From NCBI GenBank assembly GCA_002104905.1, contig MCFE01000078.1:62001-126000 (forward strand): DNA of 64,000 nt, written 5' to 3'. A model generated the notes under the pieces. The model searched no databases and was not told the DNA's origin. It saw nothing but the letters and a program-made list of their open reading frames with translations. Both the position numbers and the translations under genes were made by a program. This document shows positions 7,471 to 62,058 of this stretch, one piece after another (position 1 is the stretch's first letter; every line of letters begins with the position of its first letter). The stretch comes from Basidiobolus meristosporus CBS 931.73 (taxonomy: Eukaryota; Fungi; Basidiobolomycota).

Positions 7471-7635
7471 ATACTTACCTGGCAGGGACAGTCCGTGATC
7501 AAGTAGGCGGGCTGTTCGTTTTAGAACTTGGGCATTGCACAGCGTCCCAGGGTCTTTAACGCGAACATCTTTCGGGGTGTCTCGACTGTTAAATTTTTGT
7601 TTGTGGGAGGTGAGCGCTATGCGCCGCCTCCTGCC
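7471..7635 (+). ncRNA. U1: U1 spliceosomal snRNA
   Basis: Starts ATACTTACCTGG. Stem I GGACAGTCCGT/GCGGGCTGTTC closes loop GATCAAGTAG (U1-70K site). Loop II is CATTGCAC (U1A site). Helix H is GCAG/CTGT, followed by Sm site AATTTTTG and a GC-rich terminal hairpin GGGAGGTG...CGCCTCCT. Confidence 0.95.
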
Positions 7636-7695: not shown

Positions 7696-8952
7696 TTAAT
7701 TTGCATGAGCTTTGTTGACCTTATCTTCCTTTTTGATCTCATCATTGAGTTCCTGAAGCTCCTTAACATATTGTTTGGTGAAAACATCGAAGTAGTATGT
7801 ACTTCCGTTCCACAAACTGATCAGCGAGATACCTAATAAAAAGGCTGTATGGAGCCAAAAGTATCGATATAGCAAGATGGTTGGTAACATGGTGACAAGT
7901 GCGTAGATAAGCTGCATCCCCATGAACGTATAAATCTTGTACTTGTCTCCAAAAACCGCCGCAGTCTGGCCGATCTTTGATTTTCTATCCTCAAGTAGCC
8001 ACGTAATCGAAGTAGCCCTCTTGCCTTGGAAGACCTTCTCCTTTCTTCCAACCAATATGAAGATATAGTACAATACTTGCCATATGCCATATATCAGAAG
8101 TGAAAACAATATAGCATCAATAAATCTAACGGGATCTTCGATGCCTTTGTTCTTCTGTTGGTTAGCATAGGAGCCGTAACGCTCCATCCTTTGCGCCGAT
8201 ATGGGTATTAGCCAGCGGATGGTGTAAAGGGTGAATGGGGGTGCAATGTGAATGAAAGTGGATGTGACTTTGTCTAGAGAGTGAAATACCAAGGAGTTCC
8301 TCCACGCTACAACCGCCCATAATATTGGTCCGTGAGACAGGCAAAAGGCTGCACTAAAGATGTAGGCATTTTTGGGAAACACCCACAGATAGAAAATCAC
8401 CAGGACATTAACAAAGTAGCACAGGTCAAATACGAAATAATGCCAAGCCTTCGATTTGTATATCACAAAACGAAGAAATACCAAACCAACAGCCCAGAAG
8501 GTATACCATTCTGGCATCCAGGCAGGTATCCTTCCGACTAGATAGGCCACTGAGAATATGTTACTGACACCCAAGACAAAGGAAATCTTATCCCTTAATC
8601 TGATTACGTGTTTCTCCTGCCATTTGCGGGCCATCTTCTCCCGTTGCTCCACTAGCTTGATCTTTTTCTGAAGACGCTCGCGGGATTCCTTGTCGAGCTT
8701 GGCTTTCTTCAAGAGGTTATTATAGGTTTCATCAAGTTTTTTACTCCAATCATTCCGCTTCGCCTGCATGGCCTCTTTTGTGTGAAGTGGGATCTGGTTA
8801 ACCAAGGCCAAAAGGATATTGTCAAACAAGGAGAATTGCTCCTCGGACCAGATATCATCAAAGTCTGTATCTGACATGGAGCTGTTGGTTGGCGAAGGAG
8901 GAATCTGCCTGAGTTCAGCGTCAGGCTTGTCTGGAAAGGAGGCTTCGTTCAT
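7696..8952 (-). CDS. GPC1: Glycerophosphocholine acyltransferase (Gpc1/DUF2838 family), multi-pass membrane protein, 418 aa
   Basis: Motifs YFVFDLCYFVN, WRNSLVFHSLDKVTSTFIH and SLWNGSTYYFDVF, with multiple hydrophobic segments. Confidence 0.85.
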   Translation of the reverse strand: MNEASFPDKPDAELRQIPPSPTNSSMSDTDFDDIWSEEQFSLFDNILLALVNQIPLHTKEAMQAKRNDWSKKLDETYNNLLKKAKLDKESRERLQKKIKLVEQREKMARKWQEKHVIRLRDKISFVLGVSNIFSVAYLVGRIPAWMPEWYTFWAVGLVFLRFVIYKSKAWHYFVFDLCYFVNVLVIFYLWVFPKNAYIFSAAFCLSHGPILWAVVAWRNSLVFHSLDKVTSTFIHIAPPFTLYTIRWLIPISAQRMERYGSYANQQKNKGIEDPVRFIDAILFSLLIYGIWQVLYYIFILVGRKEKVFQGKRATSITWLLEDRKSKIGQTAAVFGDKYKIYTFMGMQLIYALVTMLPTILLYRYFWLHTAFLLGISLISLWNGSTYYFDVFTKQYVKELQELNDEIKKEDKVNKAHAN

Positions 8953-21261: not shown

Positions 21262-24200
21262 CTATACTACATCTGAAAGTGCGAGGCCAGCTTGACCCTC
21301 GGTGCTGGAAGTTGTAGGTGGTTGCAACCGTGTCGGCATTCGCAGCTGGAATATGTATTGATGATGACTCTGAAAGGGTTCCATAACACAGTAGATCCCG
21401 GTCTTGTTTTTGCCATTATTTAAACATCTCAGTCCGGTGGTTTCTATTACTTGTTCCAGCGCCCCAGTTTCGACATTTCTAATTTCAATAAAGGACGGGT
21501 TGAACCCAATCAAGTATGGATAATGTAAGGCGAGGGTCGTCGGTTGACCTTCCCATTCCATAAAGAACTCGGGTCTTGAACGATGTCCATCATTATCGAT
21601 GTAGAACACAAATTCGTCATAACATAGCAGAAGCTCTTCTGATCCGATTCGATACATGGCCAACGGCTTGTAGTGCTCATACTTCGTGAAGAAGCTGAAT
21701 TGGCGCTCGTTCTTGGGATCGGGGATGGCTCTGTGAGCCTCGTTCTCCAGGTCAAGAACCTCAAATCCCTTGCTGGACACGAGATACAGTCTCTTCTTCA
21801 TAAAGCAGATCGAGTTGAAATCGGTCGAGATGCAAAGCTGATTAGTCAACTTCAGGGCATAACCATTTTTCTGGCAGAGCAATTTGGGCTTCCCCTTGAC
21901 TTGACTGACTTTGACTGGCTCCAGGATTTTGCAAAACGATTTCAGCCCTTTGAGCTTCATGATTGCAACATACTTGTGGTCGTTCAGCGTGCCTGCACAG
22001 AAGTAAGTAACATGCGAGGCAAGCTTTTGTCCATGGCGATTTACGAATCTCTTGGGATTGTCCAACAAGTCGATACTGTAGCAAATCAATAATCTATCCT
22101 GCAACACCAGTATCATCTCGAACTCCTCCAGAATTTCGATGTGCCGTATCTTTTCCAGGCTCAGCACTTTACTAAAGCTTGTAGAATTCCCTTCGATACC
22201 GACATACACTCCATCATCTGCGCCAATCACGATCTTCCGCGACTTGTTGGCGGCAGTGTAGTGCGTGGAACATGTGATCCTACACACAAGGCCAAATGTA
22301 GAATCTGAGATGGTTATGATATCAAACGCATGAGGTCTTTCCATCATTCTGCGGGCACGCTGATCCTGTATTCTGTTGACCCATTGCTTCCGCTCAGCAG
22401 GAGAGGTGGCGAGTAGTGTGTAAGTCGACCCGCGTTTACTGATGTGGGTGAAGCAAAAGGGGAACCCTAGTTTAACAGAATCCGACACCGCGGGGGAAAC
22501 TGAATCAGGCTCATTAAAGGTAAATAGCTCCAACGGGATTGGCTGAAGAGAAGAGAAGAGAAGAGGGTGGTTTAGACAATGTAACAATTACAAATCGCGT
22601 GAATACTCACCCTTCCATAAACCCGATAGAAAACGGAGCCATTGGAGTGTTTTTTTTCCTTGGTGAGCAGGAAAACATGATCAAAAAGGAACACCCGCAG
22701 AGAATGGCCGGTGGGTCGCTTAAATTGGCCTTCACGGATCAGCTTACGATTCGGGTCATTCAGTTGTAAATCCTGCAACGAATCGGGGAGTGAGCATTTT
22801 GAAAATCACTGAAACCGTGAGGGATGCCTACCTGAAATTCACCAGGCTTGAATACGATTTGGTCCATCAGATCGTGAATGCGAATGACGGAGTTGCGCTG
22901 CCCAGTTTCTTCATTGATTCTTTTCAAGATCTCTCGAATTCCATCTAAGGCCTTTCTAAGGATCTCCTTGTCTGGATTTGTCTCGGGTGTGTATTTGATA
23001 ATGCTTTCGAACAGAAGATTATATCTTCCCAGGCGGGTGGTAGGCCGGCTCATGAAGCTCTTCAGATCCAGTTTCCTTGTTTCTGGGTTTCTCTCTTGCT
23101 CCTATTTGATGTACGAGTATGTTAGATCTCTTCTTGATAGGATGGAGGGCATTGGTGTTACTTACTTGTAGATATTTTACCAAGTTCTGATTCTTCTTCA
23201 ATTCTTTGTCCAGAACCCGCTGTGCAACAACCAGATTAGAGCCATATTCCAGATAAGCTTCCATTGCTTTGATCTCGCATAGATAAATATCTCCGATTTC
23301 CTGGACGACTAGGTTCTGGTTCTGTCTCGCAACTAAGGCCTCAACAATTCTATTGTGCACCACCTCCAATTCTTTAATATTGGCAAAAAGGTCTTGAAGA
23401 AACGAGTCGACACGCTCCTTCTCTATTATCTCCTTTTCTTTCAGCGGGATGACAAATACCTAAGATTAGAACATCAGTTGAAATTCCGATAGAAGTAAAT
23501 GTCGCATTTCCGTTACCTTTTCGATCAATCTCAAGTCAGCCAGGTATTCCTCCTCAGTATAAATAGTTTCGAATATGATTTCCTGTCGCTTTATATCCTT
23601 TTCCGACATGTTTTGTGTAACCTCTGGTGGGACAGTATTTGCCCAACACCTCAGCTATTTTGTATCAGTGCTACGTCCCATTATCATAGGATAACAAGTT
23701 AACAACGTACCTTATCCCCTACTACCTCAATGCTTCTTCTAGATGGCTCCTGTGATTGATCTTGATCTTTAACCAAGGAATTGTGACTTGTATTCTTGGA
23801 ATCAACATCCAGATCGTCTGACAGTATTGATTCTTCCGAGATGGTAGAAACTTCATTTTGTTCGTTTTGGAACTCCTCCAATTGGAATACTGCACTGTCG
23901 GCATGAAGGCTGGACACTCCATCCATCTCTTTAAGCTCTTTGTCGCAGAAAGATGTGGACAAGCTAAATTCGTCGCTCGATAGATCAGACATTACCGAAG
24001 CTTCATCCAAATTCCTCGATTGTCTGGTGCAACCAGCTGAATTTGTATCAGAATCTGACTCCTTAACATCAGGCTCCTTTGCACTTTCTATAGGTGCCAG
24101 TACAATTGGATGGACAGGTGAGCTTTTTGCGGATTCGAGGGTTTCCTTGATTTTGCTCAAAGTGGGCCTTAGGTCAACACTGTGCCTCAAATCGATAATC

Positions 24201-32110: not shown

Positions 32111-32480
32111 GGTACGGACCTTCCAAAGATAGTGGACATGGTGGAATAAAAAAAGGGAGGTAATTTACGATTACTAAAATAGAGTTGACACAACATGGTA
32201 TTATAATATGTTACGAGCGGAGGGTGAGTCTGAGAAATTACAAAATACCCCGCTCCTTAATCGGATATAATAAATCAATCACTGCAAATAACTGGAAGAG
32301 TTAAAGTCAACCAAAGGATATGTTTTAGAATGGCCAAAAGTTATGCACTACTTTGATCAAAACAAACCGATGGAATTCGCTTTGGAACGAGAGAATCGAC
32401 TAGTAAACTGACTTTCCACCGGGGAATATATTACAAGCAACTCGACCATTCGAAATTGATGCTCTAACAGAGCTGGATAT

Positions 32481-36207: not shown

Positions 36208-39200
36208 ATGTTTACACTTCCTACACTTTGTGAAAATTCTCACTTTTGGGAGGATATATTAAGCAATGAATACTTCATTGCTCAGCGTGCTCTTGGTTCC
36301 AACAATTCTCTGCTGAAAAACGTCATTGGAACCATTCAAAATGTGTTAGTGTCTTGATTCTCTTTAATAATGATCAATTTTCGTACTTGTCTTATCTTCC
36401 TTTCCACTGATACTCCTATTTGTATAGTTTGGATACAAAACAAGCTCCTTTCCGTATCCTATTTCGACCAAACGCAAATGGAGATAGAATGCATCTAATA
36501 GCCGAGTCTGATTCTCGTGATGGGATTGAGAAGCCATGGAAGTGGCTTGAAGGTAAAGTCTACACGTAACACTAGTTGATCTTGGAGTACTATCTAACTC
36601 TTTTGATAGACCATCTTGTCAAAGAGCTGCAGGCTTTAGACGATCCGTTTGAAAGAGAGACCTTTGTTCTAACGAAGATTAATTCATTGGTATCAAGCTT
36701 GGATGCTGGCGACGATTCGGCTAATGACGAAAAGCTTAGAGCGGCAACAAGAGCTTTTAGACAAACATTTAATTTACCTACGAGTGAAAGAGTCGTGAAT
36801 TTCTATTCATGTGGATATCACCGTAACTTTATGATCAACCAAGGCTGGATGTACATAAGTGAGCACTATCTATGCTTTTACTCGTTTATCCTTGGCATCG
36901 AGGCCAAAATCCAGATCCCATTGAGAGATATAGAAAGCTTACATAAGGAAGTGTCCAAAAGAGGGCTGCTCTCGGATGCAATCAAAGTTATTACCAGAGA
37001 TAAAAAAGAGGTATACCAACATTTATAGTGTATATATGATAGCTTGTGAACCAATATTAACAGGTATTTACTGGCACAGTACTTCTTCTCTAATCTATTT
37101 CGTCGTGATGAGGTAAGCAGGCGTGATTGTATGTACCTGGCGGATTTAGCAAGAATTAATTTGAGATTCTGTAGACATATGATCTTTTAGTTCAGTTAAC
37201 GAACTTATCAATGCAAAAGCTATTGCAAAATACTGCGATGGATTTCGCACCCGGGCTATCGTTGGATGCTCAAACTGCAGCTGAATCTCTCTACGACTCG
37301 TCAGACATTACACTTGGTACAAAATCATCGAGCCAGAGTCTTCAGAGCCGTTTTCAAAAAATGACCTTGAAGGAGGATCTCAGGCTGCAGAAACGAAATG
37401 CCATATTCCAGACAACCTTTCGTCTTCCATCATCAGAGCATTTACTCGTTGAAACGGATGCTATTCTTTCTGTACCCAACCGTGAAGAAAAATATCACGG
37501 AAAGCTCAGTATCTCCGAAACATTTATCACATTTTTATCTACCGATGGGCGCTTGTGTTCCACTGCCATTCCGTTATTTGTGATTCGTAGGGTAGAAAGG
37601 ATCAACCCCAAGTCGAATTTATGTATCCTGGCTATAACCACTTGGCATCATATGAAAGTGGTATTTCAAATACAAGGCTCGCGCAAGATCGGGGAAAGCT
37701 ACTGTACAGCACTCAGAACCAACCTCAAAGATCAGGTGAATGCCATGAAAGCGCTCAAGCCGTTTTTGCAAACATGCGTCTCCGAAACCATATTGAAAGA
37801 AAAGGAGATTCTGAAAAATGGTGGGCTTGGTCTGAAATTTGGGTATCCTGGCGATGCAAAGAAATCGAAGGAAAAAGGGAAAAACAAATACTGGTTCAGC
37901 TATCTCAAAGACAATGGCCGCAATCTTACCCTTCTAAAATTCCCGGATTTCTCTCGGTTAGTCAGGATTGGACTCCCAAACAATTTACGCGGTGAAATAT
38001 GGGAAATATGCAGTGGCTCTATCTATCTGAGAGCTATGAACTCAGGCCTCTACGAAAAAATTATAGACGAAAATGCTGGCAAAGTGTCGTTGTCAACTGA
38101 GGAAATCGAGAAAGATTTGAACCGCTCGCTACCGGAGTACCCTGCTTATCAAATAACAGAAGGCATCGATACGCTAAGAAGAGTATTGACGGCCTATTCT
38201 TGGAAAGATCCTGCACTTGGCTATTGTCAGGCCATGAACATAGTCGCATCAGCTATTCTCATTTATATGAGTGAGGAGCAAGCGTTCTGGACTTTGAGCG
38301 TGCTCTGCGATCGATTGCTTCCTGGATATTATAGTACATCCATGTATGGTGCGCTTCTTGATCAATCAATTTTCGAACACCTAGTTGAGCAGTGTATGCC
38401 TATCCTGCATGAACATCTCAAGAAAGCCGATATTCAACTGTCAGTAGCTTGTTTGCCCTGGTTTTTAAGCCTCTTCATCAATACTATGCCGCTCTCATTT
38501 GCCTTCCGGGTATTGGACTGCTTTTTCTTGGAAGGTCCACAAGTTTTGTTCCAGGTGGCGCTTGCAATTATCAAGATTAATGGGGATGAGCTTATCGAGG
38601 CAACTGATGACGGAGCGTTTATTCACACACTCAAACAATATTTCACCAAGTTGGATGATCCTCTCTATCCGCACAGCAAAAACCCAAGGGCTAAATTGTT
38701 AACCAAGTTCCATGAGCTTATGTTGGTTGCGTTTAAGGAATTCGCTCATGTCAACACTGAATGTATCACAGAGCTGCGCAAATCACACCAATTCCGGATC
38801 GTTCATAATATAGAGAGCTTCACAAAACGCACTCACATTCGTAATCTTATTGAAACGTCAAGATTCAACAAGGAGGAATTGTCAGCCATCTATGACAAGT
38901 TCTATGATGTCCAATTTTACAGCAACAAGAAGCAATCAGAAAGGCCTGACCTCAAAATGGACTTCTGGAATTTTCACAAGTTCCTCGGTACCCTTGCTCC
39001 ATGGGCCATTATAGAGACTAGTACCGAATCACAGCGATTGTTGAAAGGCCACGGGTCTTTGGTTATCCAGAAGAAAACTGTCGGCAGCTCATTCATTGAA
39101 AAGCTGTTCAAATACTTCGACAAAACCCGATGCGGCAGCTTATCCCTTCAAGACATCGTTAACGGGCTCCAAGACATCATGTTTGGTGATCTGATGTCGC

Positions 39201-39874
39201 AGATCCAACTTTTCTTCCATCTCCACGACAGCAATGATGATGGTTTCTTATCAAAGGAGGATATTTTACAATTATCTGAGAGCTTCTTGTTTCTATTCCG
39301 AAACGAGAAGGATGACCGGTATCTTCGCGCAGTTTCCAATCTTCTTCAGAACTCCATCCAATACTCCGAATCTGCTATGCATGCAGCCAACCCACAGGTC
39401 TTAGAAACGGTGGATGGAAATGGTGACATCCTCAGCACTGTGGTAGAAAGGGAGGATGATGGAATAATCGTATCGTTGCCTACATTTCGTATGATTGTTC
39501 TTACTGACGAAACATTGGAGCAATTTTTCGACTACAAGTTTGCTGCATCTTTCCAACTGACGGTTGATTCTAGTACTGATAAGCAGAAAGGCCTTGGTCG
39601 AGAAATCTTTGAATCATTACTTAATGAAGGGTCTCGACTCGCCGATCGTGTGTCTCAATTTCCTAAGAGAAAACTTATCAGGAGCTCACCTGTCCCGAGT
39701 GTGCATTCGCAAGTGGAGAATCTGATTGATATATCGCCACCATCTCTTTCCGCTTCAGATGCCAACAAGGATCCCCACGACGATGAGGATGAGGATGATT
39801 TGATGGCCGTAGACCACCTGCTTCGACATTTAGATGAACCCCACAAAGAAAGTTTAATTGATGATTTTCCATAG
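36208..39874 (+). CDS. MDR1: GRAM-TBC-EF-hand Rab GTPase-activating protein (Mdr1/Gyp2, TBC1D9-like), multi-exon
   Basis: GRAM exons (FRQTFNLPTSERVVNFYSC; FRLPSSEHL), TBC catalytic IEKDLNRSLP and GYCQAMN, and EF-hand FHLHDSNDDGFLSKEDI. Confidence 0.9.
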
Positions 39875-40245
39875 CTTGACGTTCTTTGATACAATCACAA
39901 AATATAACTTCATATATTTTTCCCCACCTTTAGAGGAGCATTAGACTGCTCGACTTTGATATAAAAGTATCTACACCTGTATTTCTTCACACCTTCAATG
40001 TTATAAAGATTCATTAGAGTACACGTTATTTTCAAGACGGTTTTTATTAATCCAAAGGTTGCTCCATTTTTCCAATATATGTACGGGCATGAGAGCTCAA
40101 GATAAAGCTAATAATATGGCACGAACATTAACTATCTCTAGAACTTTACTCTATGCGCTTAGTATTGAGAGTATAATTATACGTAGATTGATTCAGTAGC
40201 TCATGATATTCATATTCACAAAAACATCGCTAGTAGTTTGTACAA

Positions 40246-41318
40246 TTACTCATGGTTATGCTGCTCCATTTCTTCATTATCGATCACTTCGTCAATTTGT
40301 TGGCACTTATGTGTCACTTCCTCTCTTTCTTCTGATTCCATTGCACGAGATCTTTTACGTGCCGCCAATCTGACTAGGGCTCGCTCGCGGTTTTCTCTGA
40401 TACGACGCAGCTGATCCACCTCAATATCACCGCTGGATCCTGTTAATTACACTCCATCATTAGCATCGACAGGGGGAATTGTGTTTACTCCTAGCTGATT
40501 GCTTATGTTCTCATCGTTGTCGCCAAAGCACCAGTCAGTTAATGCTTCGGGCCTGCGTTCACATCTTGATTAACCACAAAGAAGCTAAAATAGTCTAGCA
40601 GGACAATCTTACCGGTTATTATCGAGCTGAATCTGAACCTCTGTAATACCTTTTGATACCTAAAATACCACCCTATATGCATTCAATAAATCATACCAGG
40701 AGCCATGTCGCGATTAGAAAGCTCTGTCTTTATGAGCTCTTCCCGAAAAATCTGTTGTGTAGAGGTAGTTAACTTCGTATCACTGAGCCATCAAAATCTG
40801 CAATTACTTTAAGTTTCCTTTCCGGGCACAGGTTTTCTATCTTCTTGACTGCGTCTAGGAAACGCATTTTTGGAAACAATTGATGGCACCAAAGTTGATA
40901 GAAATCCAATAGTTGTTGGAGGTCTTCAAACTATACCAAAGGTATTGGAATTGACAAAACTCGGGACGTCAGGTATTCATTTAACGATTACCTCCTGACC
41001 CTTTCCCTTGAATTTTAGCTTAGGACCTTTCTCCTTGATAAGCATCAATCCGTTGGGTTGAAGCAAACTAGGCAAAAATGAGCAAGTTGGTCAACCCAGG
41101 CTTTGAGAATATGCTACTTTACCGATTAGCATCTAACTTGGGTTGCGGTTCTCTCCTCTGACGAGTCTCGACTTTGTCGAGATCCTCGGCGGAGAGTGAG
41201 CTAGTCGAGAAGGGTTTGTTTGGTTGTTGGACCTCCTCGAACCCGCCCACTTCTTCATTCTGGTAAGTTGTGGAAGGAGTTTTTTGCCACTGTCGGCGTC
41301 TAGCTCGTATTCAAACAT
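40246..41318 (-). CDS. CSM3: Replication fork protection subunit Csm3/Swi3/TIPIN, multi-exon; 5' end and one internal junction unresolved
   Basis: Swi3 domain PKLDANRLLQPNGL...KLKFKGKGQEFEDLQQLLDFYQLWCHQLFPKMRFLDAVKKIE assembled across GT-AG introns. C-terminal QLRRIRENRERAL motif. Confidence 0.8.
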
Positions 41319-41876
41319 AAGAGTTGTTGAGGCTAATGGGACTACTCCCACTACTCACTACTAGATCGTAAATATCACCACACTCAATTGTGTTTGTTGA
41401 TTATTCTAATTAGGATTAATTGATTGGTGTATGCGGAATATAAACTGCTGATCACTCCACTCTTTATACCGAGAGTTAATCAGAGAACTAACCAACTCTA
41501 ATTACTTCGGCAGTCTGAGCAGATCAAGGTAAAAATATTCTCGACGTCTATTTATAATTTCACGGGAATGTTCTTGATCTGATAGGCTGAGCCATATATG
41601 TCCATCATCGATACGTCTCTGGAGCGTTTTTGACATCTTCAGAGAATTTGTTATTGGATGGACGAAAGCCATTCTTCAGACATGGCTTTCCCCTTCCGAG
41701 ATCACTCTTGTATCCGTATTTCGAAAATTTGGTTCCCTTCTTTGGACATTGCAATAATAACCCAATCTTTCTTTTTTTCTCTTGAGCTACTTGGTTTAAC
41801 GAAGCAACATTATTTCTAAACTCCGAACACTTCGTTTGACCCTCTCTGTATAAATCTCGGTTTAACAAAGCACTGT

Positions 41877-43197
41877 ATGTTCCTGTTACAGCTTTTATCA
41901 CTCCTCGGTCTAAACTCACTCGTCTACGGGCTGGACTCTACCGACACTTCTATCGGGGGTATGAATTTCGCCATATACGCCTTGTTGCCAGTACTAATCT
42001 CCTTACAGCGAGTTACCTCGATTCATACTGTGGCCCGGATCTCTACTGCCTCCCGAAGGAAGATGAACTATGGTACCCGCACGATAGTGAGTTTGTCAGG
42101 TGGAACAGGTACTATCCTACTTTTTCGACTTTCGTCAACATATCGCTATTCAATACGAAGTCAGAGGTCCCGGTGGAGGAATGGCCTCTTTATAAAAACG
42201 AAGGTCTGCTGGTTATCAATAATATCCCTTCCAGCTGGTTCATTGGGGTGAATTTAAGCGCCAATGTGACCCAGGAGTTTTACTTCTTCATCACTGGACC
42301 CTATACTCCTACAGTTGTCATACCAAGAGGCCCCAACTTCTATATACAAAGTAGGTGATCTTGTTTCAGATCAAGAATACAAAACGTTTACCAAGCAAAA
42401 TTCACTAATGTTGATGCGGATCATATTTAAGAGCCGCAGATATTACCTGCCTATGCTAACCCTGTAGCAGTTGTCAATGCCTCCGAATCTATTATTCACA
42501 CAAGTACTGTCGTATCCATGACTCCTACCAGCCGTCCCTCAACCGTAGTGAGTTCAATACCATCTAGTACCAGCTCATCACCAGCGACACAAAACTCGAG
42601 TTCCACCAATCTGTCAGCAGGCGCAATCAGCGGTATCACTGTTGGCAGTGTGGCTGGTGTTACGATAATTGCTTGATATCCTTTATTTTCACTCGCTCCG
42701 CTCGCTGCTTCACACATTCTATACTACCTCCATCTTTCCTTGACTTTGCTTTCCTTACTTTAGTCTATTTTTTCCGACGTAGACGCAGAAATCAAGCTTC
42801 CAGCTATGAAACCAAAGCGGAGATCGACTCGGGTCCCACAATGGCTTGCAACAGTTCAGCTGATACTTCTGGCCCTGATACAGATGTCACCATGGAGATG
42901 GCCGAGCCACCAAATCCCATCAAACGGAATTCGCTTCGACTAACTGTGAAAGGGGCCCAAGAGCTTGCCCACACCTACCGAAAGATGCTTACCAACCAGG
43001 AAACGGTGGAGGAGAGCTCCACCCAGAATCAGCCTCGGACTCTGTACAGTGATGAGCTGCTTCGTCGAGAGTTAGCAGCTGATGGTCACGGTGTGAAATA
43101 CGTCTCTACTGCACCGGCGATCGTCGTGATGGGTGACGACCAACAAAGTCTACGTAGTATGACTGCTGATACTTCGGATTCGAGAGAGATCCCTTGA
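41877..43197 (+). CDS. Type I membrane protein with Mid2/Wsc-like sensor architecture, join(41877..41958,42009..42350,42468..42675,42759..43197), 356 aa
   Basis: Signal peptide MFLLQLLSLLGLNSLVYG, ~130-aa ectodomain, S/T-rich stalk, TM LSAGAISGITVGSVAGVTIIACLVYFF, RRRRR stop-transfer and a cytoplasmic tail. The exons total 1071 nt in frame. Confidence 0.8.
42676..42758 (+). other. U12-type (minor spliceosome) AT-AC intron, 83 nt
   Basis: 5' splice site ATATCCTTT, branch site TTCCTTGAC at 42736-42744, 3' end ...TTAC. Excision removes a TGA and rebuilds the TM helix in frame. Confidence 0.85.
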
Positions 43198-43601
43198 GAA
43201 ATCACCACAACCTTCCAAACTTTTGCATCGAATTCATCCAACCTATACCCCACCCATCTTAGAATACCCTTGATTGTGTAAAAACCCCCTTTCGCCCCCG
43301 CACCTTCCCCTTCACATCAAATGTAAGTAAAAGTCATACCCATCGCTTCGCCCAGAAATCCTATCTCACCTGATTCGCTGAAGATCTGTTTCATTTAACC
43401 ATATGGGTGAAGATCCCTTATCTGCCTAATCTGTTGCGTGCATACCTAACCCCAACCTCGATACTTTATCCCACTAGTCCTCCAACTGACTGACAATTCA
43501 GCTTGATCGCTATGGGGGCGGTAAGACAGACCTGGGTATTATAGCTATTTTCATCATGTTGAGGATCTATCATACATTACTTGATTTATCCCATTTCCTA
43601 G

Positions 43602-59868: not shown

Positions 59869-62058
59869 TTAGTAACTTCTGCCGAACAAGGTCCAGCGCT
59901 TAGCGTCAGCACCACAAGCGGCACACTTGGTGACCCCGGGGACGATGGGCTTGTCTTGGGGTTGCTCTAAGGGGATGCAGAGGGATTTGGCTCCCATGGA
60001 TGGGGCTCTCTCGTCCTCAGCCTCATCCTCTTGCTCCTCGTTACGGGAGCTCTTCTCCTTAATGTCATCCTCACATTGGACTTCCTCACACCAGGGGATC
60101 ATCACGGAGCAGCGGGAGTTCAAGGCAGGAACGAAGTCCTTCCACTCGGTGACGTATTTCACGTGTGCGTCGCGAACAGCCTTGGCACTCTCGAACATAT
60201 CCTTTTGAATGGTTTGCAAAAGAGCAGGAACATCGGTAGCAAGAGAAGCCATGGGAATAGGTGCCTTCTTACCGTTGTCACGACGGACTGAGAGAGTGGA
60301 CTTCTTGGCAAGGTCCATGGGGCCGATTTCAAGACGAAGTGGAGTACCACGGAGTTCCCAGTGGTTGAACTTGTATCCGGGAGTGTAGTTCTCTCTCAAA
60401 TCAGCCTTGGCTCTAACGCCGACAGACTTGAGGATCTTCACAACCTCCTTGACACCCTCCTCAACGTTACGTCTGTCTTCGTCGGTACTCTTAACGGTAA
60501 GACCGCAAGGAACGACGATGACTTGGGTGGAGGCAACTCTAGGTGGGATAATCAAACCCTTGTCGTCACCGTGAACCATCACCATGACACCAATGGTACG
60601 GGTGGTGATGCCCCAGGAGTTCTGCCAGACGAACAACTTCTTGGCTTCAGCGTCATCACCGGCATTGGCAGGAGCGTTAGGGTCTTCAACGGTGATGTTG
60701 AACATCTTGGCGAAGTTTTGTCCCAAGCAGTGACTGGTGGCACCCTGAATACCACGTCCGGTGGTGGGGATGAAGCCTTCCACGGTGGTGGTGTAGAGGC
60801 CACCGGCGAACTTCTCCTTCTCGGATTTGATGCCCTTAATGACGGGAACAGCCAAAAGGTCCTCGTAGACTTGGCGGTAGAGATCCAAGATCTGGAAGAC
60901 TTCCTCACTAGCAAGTTCCTTGGTCAGGTGAGCGGTGTGGCCCTCCTGCCAGAGAAATTCTCTGGTACGAAGGAAAGGTTGAGGGTGCTTGAATTCCCAA
61001 CGAACAACATTACACCATTGGTTAATCTTGAGAGGAAGGTCACGATGACTACGAATCCACTTGGCAAAGTAAGGATACATGACAGTCTCGGAGGTGGGAC
61101 GGATGGCAATGGGCTCATCTAAATCAGAGGAACCAGCCTTGGTGACCCAAGCGACCTCAGGAGCGAATCCTTCGACGTGATCCTTCTCCTTCTCAAGAAC
61201 CTTAGATGAGACAAACATAGGGAAGTAGGTGTTCTCGACACCCAACTCTTGGATCTCGGCATCGAAGAAATCGGTGATGTATTTCCAGATGTTGTAGGCC
61301 AAGGGTCTGATAATGTAACATCCGCTGACGTCGTAGTACTCGAGCATTTCACTCTTGGTGACCACCTGTTGGTACCACTTGGGGAAATCGACCTCCTTTT
61401 TATACTCGATTCCAATCTTGACGCTGTCTTCCTCTGGCTTGGGCTTTTGGGCTTTGGTGGCGGCCTTAGGTGCCTTAGGTTGCTGAGGCTTGGCGGCAGG
61501 GGCTTCGGCAGCCAAGGCCTTGAAGTCAACTTCAGTGTATTTGGCGGAGGAGCTCTCGAGATATTTCTTGATCTCAGCGAGAGTAAGGAAAGTGGTCTTT
61601 TCGGAGGCAGATGGATGGAACCCGATGAGGGTTCCCTGGTCAACACTTAAAAGAGCAGCATCGACGACGAGATGAACGTTGCTGATGTTCTCGGCCGAGA
61701 CGTTTTCAAGAGCAAAAGGAGAGGTAGCCTCCTTGGTAACCCCAAAGAAACTGCTCAACAAATCCTCGTTGGCAAAACGAAGATCCTTCAAACTGAGTTT
61801 TTTACCCAAGGCGGACATGTTGGTCTCGGTGGATTCCAAGGCAACAACCATCACGGGGGTCACTGGAGCATTCTTGGCGGTCTTGGGCTTGAGAACCAAG
61901 GTCTTGGTCAAGACATAGGTGCTGGGAAGGGAGGCTTGATCGCATTGGCCTAGAGCCTCGCTCCATTCAGCATTGTTCTTGACAGGTTCGTGGTCCACAA
62001 CCTTAGGTGAAATGCTAAGCGAAGTGAAACGGTCAACAACAGATTGAAAAGTAGCCAT
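59869..62058 (-). CDS. Cytosolic prolyl-tRNA synthetase with N-terminal YbaK/ProX-like domain, single exon, 729 aa
   Basis: KTLVLKPK...DLRFA (YbaK-like), [51 protein letters not shown] and C-terminal LFGRSY. Confidence 0.97.

Follow-up and report, generated by a model that had tools for sequence, protein, structure and literature searches.

The window analysed here, a 64,000-nucleotide stretch of the genome of Basidiobolus meristosporus CBS 931.73, carries on its forward strand K493DRAFT_335228, a gene of four exons (Table 1; window position x is position x + 62000 of contig MCFE01000078.1, assembly GCA_002104905.1). The product is a type I membrane protein with a signal peptide, an ectodomain of about 115 residues, a Ser/Thr-rich stalk, one transmembrane (TM) helix and a tail of about 140 residues. 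Two cysteines, a CGPDLYC motif and several N-glycosylation sites were found in the ectodomain. The first two introns are of the ordinary major type, and the third and last is a U12-type AT-AC intron of 83 nt lying within the segment that codes for the TM helix. The public protein of this gene, P0019 (368 aa), matches the AT-AC-spliced model at every residue, and the intron is therefore already present in the public annotation.

The cytoplasmic tail encoded by exon 4 contains the conserved motifs SLRLTVKGAQELAH.YRKML and YSDELLRRELAADGHGVK, and across the family the long conserved tail motifs read SLRLTVK.AQ.LAH.YR and YSDELLRRELAA.GHGVK..S..PAIVV. At the nucleotide level, exon 4 is 74.5% identical to that of the B. 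ranarum orthologue over 294 nt. Further along in the window lies a single-exon prolyl-tRNA synthetase (ProRS) gene, whose 729-aa product is identical to a public protein and whose exact match on MCFE01000078.1 fixes the position of the window on that contig.

Table 1. Features of the window and of the family loci compared with it. Positions are those of the window unless a locus is named; a slash marks a splice junction.
Feature	Position	Strand	Description
Exon 1	41877-41958	+	ATG and signal peptide (MFLLQLLSLLGLNSLVYG...); ends in phase 1
Intron 1	41959-42008	+	Ordinary major type, GTATGA...ACTAAT...CAG, 50 nt
Exon 2	42009-42350	+	Ectodomain, CGPDLYC motif, N-glycosylation sites; weakly Psg1-like
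Intron 2	42351-42431	+	Ordinary major type, GTAGGT...ACTAAT...AAG, 81 nt
Exon 3	42432-42675	+	Ser/Thr-rich stalk and first 21 TM residues; ends TG/ (phase 2, Cys codon)
U12-type AT-AC intron	42676-42758	+	83 nt; supported by signals, frame, conservation and match to the public protein
5' splice site of this intron	42676-42684	+	ATATCCTTT
Branch box of this intron	42736-42744	+	TTCCTTGAC
Terminal AC of this intron	42757-42758	+	
Exon 4	42759-43197	+	Last TM residues (C)LVYFF, RRRRR stop-transfer, cytoplasmic tail of about 140 aa; stop TGA 43195-43197
Rival in-frame GT-AG pair	42657-42763	+	GTGTTA...TTTAG, 107 nt; judged not the main splice
Second in-frame GT-AG pair	42648-42763	+	Donor GTGTGG
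Other ATATCCTTT copy	8811-8819	-	
Other ATATCCTTT copy	23593-23601	+	
Other ATATCCTTT copy	32313-32321	-	
Other ATATCCTTT copy	60197-60205	+	Opposite the ProRS ORF
ProRS gene	59869-62058	-	Single exon
U1 spliceosomal RNA gene	7471-7633	+	Full length; Rfam RF00003, 99.7 bits
Duplicated block	39002-43437		RabGAP-TBC, Swi3 and Psg1-like genes; matches L010 88-4618 (MCFE01000159.1)
Intron in L010	3845-3925 of L010		P0018, B. meristosporus; duplicated region
Intron in L001	3833-3909 of L001		P0002, B. ranarum; syntenic orthologue, RabGAP-TBC and Swi3 neighbours shared
Intron in L003	3788-3858 of L003		P0003, B. meristosporus
Intron in L002	3773-3847 of L002		P0001, B. ranarum
Intron in L006	2825-2897 of L006		P0012, B. 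meristosporus
Intron in L012	2242-2340 of L012		P0008, B. meristosporus
Intron in L011	1886-1965 of L011		P0023, B. meristosporus

Protein family

The original prediction described the gene as a Mid2/Wsc-like surface sensor, a label that the protein does not bear out. With P0019 as query, Pfam returned only Psg1/Ykl077w (PF14610) at 21.4 bits (E 2.4e-4; profile positions 27-184 of 186), below the gathering cut-off of 30.1 bits, and searches of the single exons gave no more than a faint match of exon 2 to the same profile (E 0.013). PF14610 was matched by 15 of the 20 family members (lowest E-value 6.4e-10), and the paralogue P0003 reached 32.0 bits. Conversely, neither Mid2 nor WSC was matched at E ≤1 in seven members or at E ≤0.01 in 20, although several members are named 'Mid2 domain-containing protein' in UniRef. 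The layout of Mid2/Wsc sensors (signal peptide, Ser/Thr-rich stalk, one TM helix and cytoplasmic tail) is indeed found in the window protein, but such a layout is not family-specific, and the ectodomain has two cysteines where a WSC domain has eight. We call the gene a member of a putative Psg1/Ykl077w-like family of membrane glycoproteins that has expanded in Basidiobolus.

Yeast Psg1/Ykl077w is a Golgi protein that stabilises Pma1, with KRR/KKxxKxx retrieval motifs in a short cytosolic part and with a Kex2 site (PMC5607100). What this protein shares with the Basidiobolus family is a signal peptide, heavy glycosylation of the lumenal or extracellular domain and a single TM segment close to where the Pfam match ends. 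They differ in the tail, which in the Basidiobolus family is about 140 residues long, ends in ...SDSREIP (P0019), carries other conserved motifs and shows no C-terminal retrieval motif, and in the lack of a Kex2 site. To our knowledge, the yeast Psg1 gene contains no minor intron and the minor spliceosome is absent from yeasts.

Splicing signals and competing in-frame splices

The 5' splice site ATATCCTTT of the third intron stands directly at the end of exon 3, the frame before it running as TG/ATATCCTTT at 42674-42684, and the unspliced stalk and TM frame meets a TGA at 42674-42676. The branch adenosine A42743 lies 15 nt before C42758, and neither GT nor AG occurs inside 42676-42761. These are exactly the 5' site, branch point and 83-nt span that had been proposed from the letters of the sequence. 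Removing the 83 nt gives ...GSVAGVTIIACLVYFFRRRRR and a coding sequence of 1107 nt that specifies 368 aa with no internal stop. The junction falls in phase 2 and makes a Cys codon (TG/T) five residues before the RRRRR stop-transfer, so that the predicted complete TM helix followed by a stop-transfer is obtained, as in P0019.

By itself, the 9-mer ATATCCTTT is weak proof of an intron, because the window holds five copies against 1.76 expected. The strict triple signal was defined as ATATCCTT, followed by TCCTTRAC and then by AC 9-16 nt past the branch A, within a total of at most 200 nt. Over both strands, chance would give this signal 0.0075 times in 64 kb; it was seen once, at the third intron. 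The four other copies of the 9-mer (Table 1) were rejected because they fell within coding sequence, stood on the wrong strand, or had no branch box and AC nearby that would give a coherent frame. A looser U12 scan (span ≤600 nt), for which 0.8 hits are expected by chance, returned further candidates that were also set aside, as they lay opposite coding ORFs (60197 and 49067) or in an incoherent frame.

Compared with catalogued U12-type AT-AC introns, no difference in kind was found. Shared with them are ATATCCTTT, a TCCTTRAC box at a distance of 11-15 nt from the 3' end, AC as the last two bases and a phase other than zero; the branch box is here a G variant. At the variant position of TTCCTTGAC, A stands in the consensus and in most paralogues (TCCTTGAC), and the same G variant occurs in the intron of the gene for P0008. 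The distance of 15 nt from branch to 3' end is at the long end of the family range of 11-15 nt. Five nucleotides beyond the terminal AC stands an AG, which might serve as a minor alternative acceptor.

This AG is also the acceptor of two in-frame GT-AG pairs, one of which (donor at 42657) had been noted as a weak competitor of the AT-AC splice. Use of either pair by the major spliceosome would yield a protein of 360 (GT 42657) or 357 (GT 42648) aa with a shortened membrane segment. Both are stop-free, and a TTGAC located 19-20 nt before the AG could act as a major-type branch site. However, neither donor, GTGTTA or GTGTGG, has a G at +5, a base present in both ordinary introns of the gene (GTATGA has it, GTAGGT being a good donor). 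The membrane segment is affected as well: the apolar run is reduced to 19 (GT 42657) or 16 (GT 42648) residues compared to 27 in the AT-AC model, and the best 19-residue Kyte-Doolittle hydropathy falls to 1.62 or 1.10, respectively, compared to 2.18. In addition, no equivalent in-frame GT-AG pair is present in the duplicate L010 or in the orthologue L001, the eight residues that the 42657 donor would delete are kept in every full-length homologue, and the public model splices AT-AC and not GT-AG. The competing pair at 42657 thus exists as described and is the weaker of the two splices, with its poor donor, short apolar run and lack of conservation; we consider it very improbable that either GT-AG pair replaces the AT-AC splice.

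The intron across the Basidiobolus family

A phmmer search with exon 2 against 1.84 billion representatives found 17 relatives, nearly all of them from B. meristosporus or B. ranarum. Outside these two species, the search matched a single sequence of Calcarisporiella thermophila, an environmental transcript and, weakly and at the E-value limit, two repeat proteins, one of them bacterial. A word search with exon 4 alone gave no match, the full-length relatives being outside the length band of that search. Eleven family loci were compared at the DNA level.

An intron at the same codon and in the same phase (phase 2) was found in seven further genes, each with ATATCCTTT, a CCTTRAC box and an AC 11-15 nt after the branch A (Table 1). 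The AT-AC intron in the TM-coding segment is thus conserved in eight genes of two species, and the conservation in orthologues on which the original prediction was to be checked is seen both in the syntenic B. ranarum gene (L001) and in the paralogues, which share codon, phase and signals. When the eight introns were aligned, with a mean identity of 48%, invariance was confined to the nine bases at the 5' end, the branch box and the terminal AC. Such invariant signals in a drifting body would be expected under selection for recognition by the minor spliceosome. The homologous proteins align through the AT-AC junction with no 8-residue gap.

The same comparison bears on whether the gene is simply broken, with the TGA at 42674 as a real stop and the downstream frame as a relic or a separate gene. 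The unspliced frame does end at 42674-42676, and the B. ranarum model P0001 is annotated as just such a truncation. The downstream frame is nevertheless strongly conserved in the orthologue and the paralogues, including the motifs SLRLTVK.AQ.LAH.YR and YSDELLRRELAA.GHGVK, and the frame of exon 4 has no sensible start of its own. Moreover, the locus of P0001 itself has the full set of U12 signals and the conserved downstream frame: the 211-aa model stops at the TGA formed by the TG/A of an unrecognised AT-AC intron, and the tail frame resumes after the AC. A broken gene is therefore almost certainly the wrong reading.

At the codon of the U12 intron, no intron was found in the genes for P0011 (L004) and P0009 (L005) or in the Calcarisporiella gene (L013). 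Introns 1 and 2 are present in all three of these genes, and the position of intron 1 is common to all family loci, Calcarisporiella included. In the protein tree, the two clades of Basidiobolus genes without the intron are nested between intron-bearing clades, with supports of 97-100. Because of this nesting, the simplest history would be that of one old intron that was already there when the family radiated in Basidiobolus and that at least two paralogue lineages have since lost. The claim that a lone minor intron sits in a fast-evolving gene accordingly has to be revised: the intron appears to be an old, conserved feature of a family expanded in Basidiobolus, and the cytoplasmic tail is well conserved. 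Since Calcarisporiella, a single outgroup, shares introns 1 and 2 and has no U12 intron, a gain in the Basidiobolus lineage followed by multiplication through gene duplication is also conceivable, and we hold it as a tentative alternative to an earlier origin and as the less likely course of events. If true, it would be a datable gain of a minor intron in fungi.

The RabGAP-TBC/Swi3/Psg1-like block to which the window gene belongs is duplicated in B. meristosporus, the two copies being 75% identical at the nucleotide level over 4.6 kb; one syntenic copy was seen in B. ranarum (L001). In the tree, the proteins of the two B. meristosporus copies form a sister pair, which places the duplication of the block after the split of the two species.

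Removal, retention and the minor introns of B. meristosporus

With a gene of the Psg1-like family as host, 42676-42758 is, on the combined signals, frame, conservation and protein match, very probably a genuine U12-type AT-AC intron, inherited from before the radiation of the family and removed by default. From these features we infer that the intron is removed in RNA, that the minor spliceosome is used, and that removal is the default and not one arm of a regulated switch.

In introns of the U12 class, U11 recognises the 5' site and U12 the branch box, after which U6atac replaces U11. At the window intron, U11 would pair with ATATCCTTT at the 5' site, and U12 with TTCCTTGAC, leaving A42743 bulged. 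U6atac would then take the place of U11, and cleavage would follow the AC 15 nt downstream of A42743. Joining of the exons would create the TG/T Cys codon in front of the stop-transfer.

The components for such a reaction have been described: Olthof et al. (2024, PMC11347168) report 237 minor introns in B. meristosporus, together with high-confidence U11, U12 and U6atac genes and a putative divergent U4atac. The absence of U11, U12 and U6atac, named at the outset as a finding that would speak against the intron, is thus, by that survey, not what the genome presents. A similar count of 249 minor introns (0.554%), the highest density in fungi, was given by Larue and Roy (2023, PMC10639083), who reconstructed a low ancestral minor-intron density for Zoopagomycota. 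In the 64-kb window, an Rfam search returned a full-length gene for the U1 spliceosomal RNA and no other match.

Regulated retention of a slowly spliced minor intron would lead to a second functional product, tail-less and ending in ...VTIIA, which could be shed, act as a decoy or possibly be lipid-anchored. Retention brings an immediate TGA in the five genes of the clade to which the window gene belongs. The U12 intron is the last intron, and there is therefore no exon junction downstream of it. At the C-terminus of the retention product, some 21 uncharged residues would follow a Ser-rich stretch, an arrangement that resembles a GPI signal. For the B. ranarum gene K7432_009463, a product of 346 aa (P0025) and one of 237 aa (P0007) are annotated. 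P0007 departs from the sequence of P0025 at the intron column of the family and ends in ...AAAGIYLFI, as a read-through of ATATCTTTTT... would; judged from the protein alone, it may represent retention of an ATATCTTT... minor intron.

On the other hand, the immediate TGA arises because a conserved Cys codon (TG/Y) meets an intron starting with A, and this codon is kept also in the intron-less relatives P0020 and P0022, so that the stop appears to be a by-product. In the paralogues whose exon ends in GC/ or GG/ there is no immediate stop and the frame reads on for many codons; therefore, no common truncated product is conserved. RNAs with retained introns are, in general, commonly kept in the nucleus or degraded, which also speaks against a second product. 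Taken together, a regulated, functional retention product seems unlikely. An anchor switch, in which the efficiency of the minor spliceosome would choose between a signalling-competent TM form and a lipid-anchored or shed form, is hinted at by the P0025/P0007 pair and is in our estimate improbable.

As a single case, this intron is solid but ordinary, since the public model and the richness of the species in minor introns were already known. What is new is the conservation throughout the family (at least eight genes), the losses (at least two) and two mis-drawn public models. The host also differs from the usual ones: here it is a lineage-expanded membrane glycoprotein gene and not an old housekeeping gene, and the intron has been multiplied by gene duplication to at least eight copies. 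The roughly 240-250 minor introns counted in B. meristosporus include copies of one ancestral intron, and the high count would thus be due in part to gene duplication and not to independent gain or retention. With retention beside at least two clean losses and one outgroup without the intron, this small system could help to date gain versus loss of minor introns in fungi.

Gene callers still mis-draw minor introns, and the models for P0001 and P0023 are useful cases for re-annotation. The P0023 model (K493DRAFT_334152, 470 aa) reads into the U12 intron, which adds 17 residues (GYPLIPNLFEFTRLPSF), and then returns to the frame through an invented 32-nt intron at 1929-1960 of L011; with AT-AC splicing the protein reads ...LLIG/LIYYLIRH. 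Two further models, P0004 (B. meristosporus K493DRAFT_343781) and P0024 (B. ranarum K7432_002029), show no normal signal peptide or TM segment where their relatives have one, and may likewise have been mis-drawn around the U12 intron.
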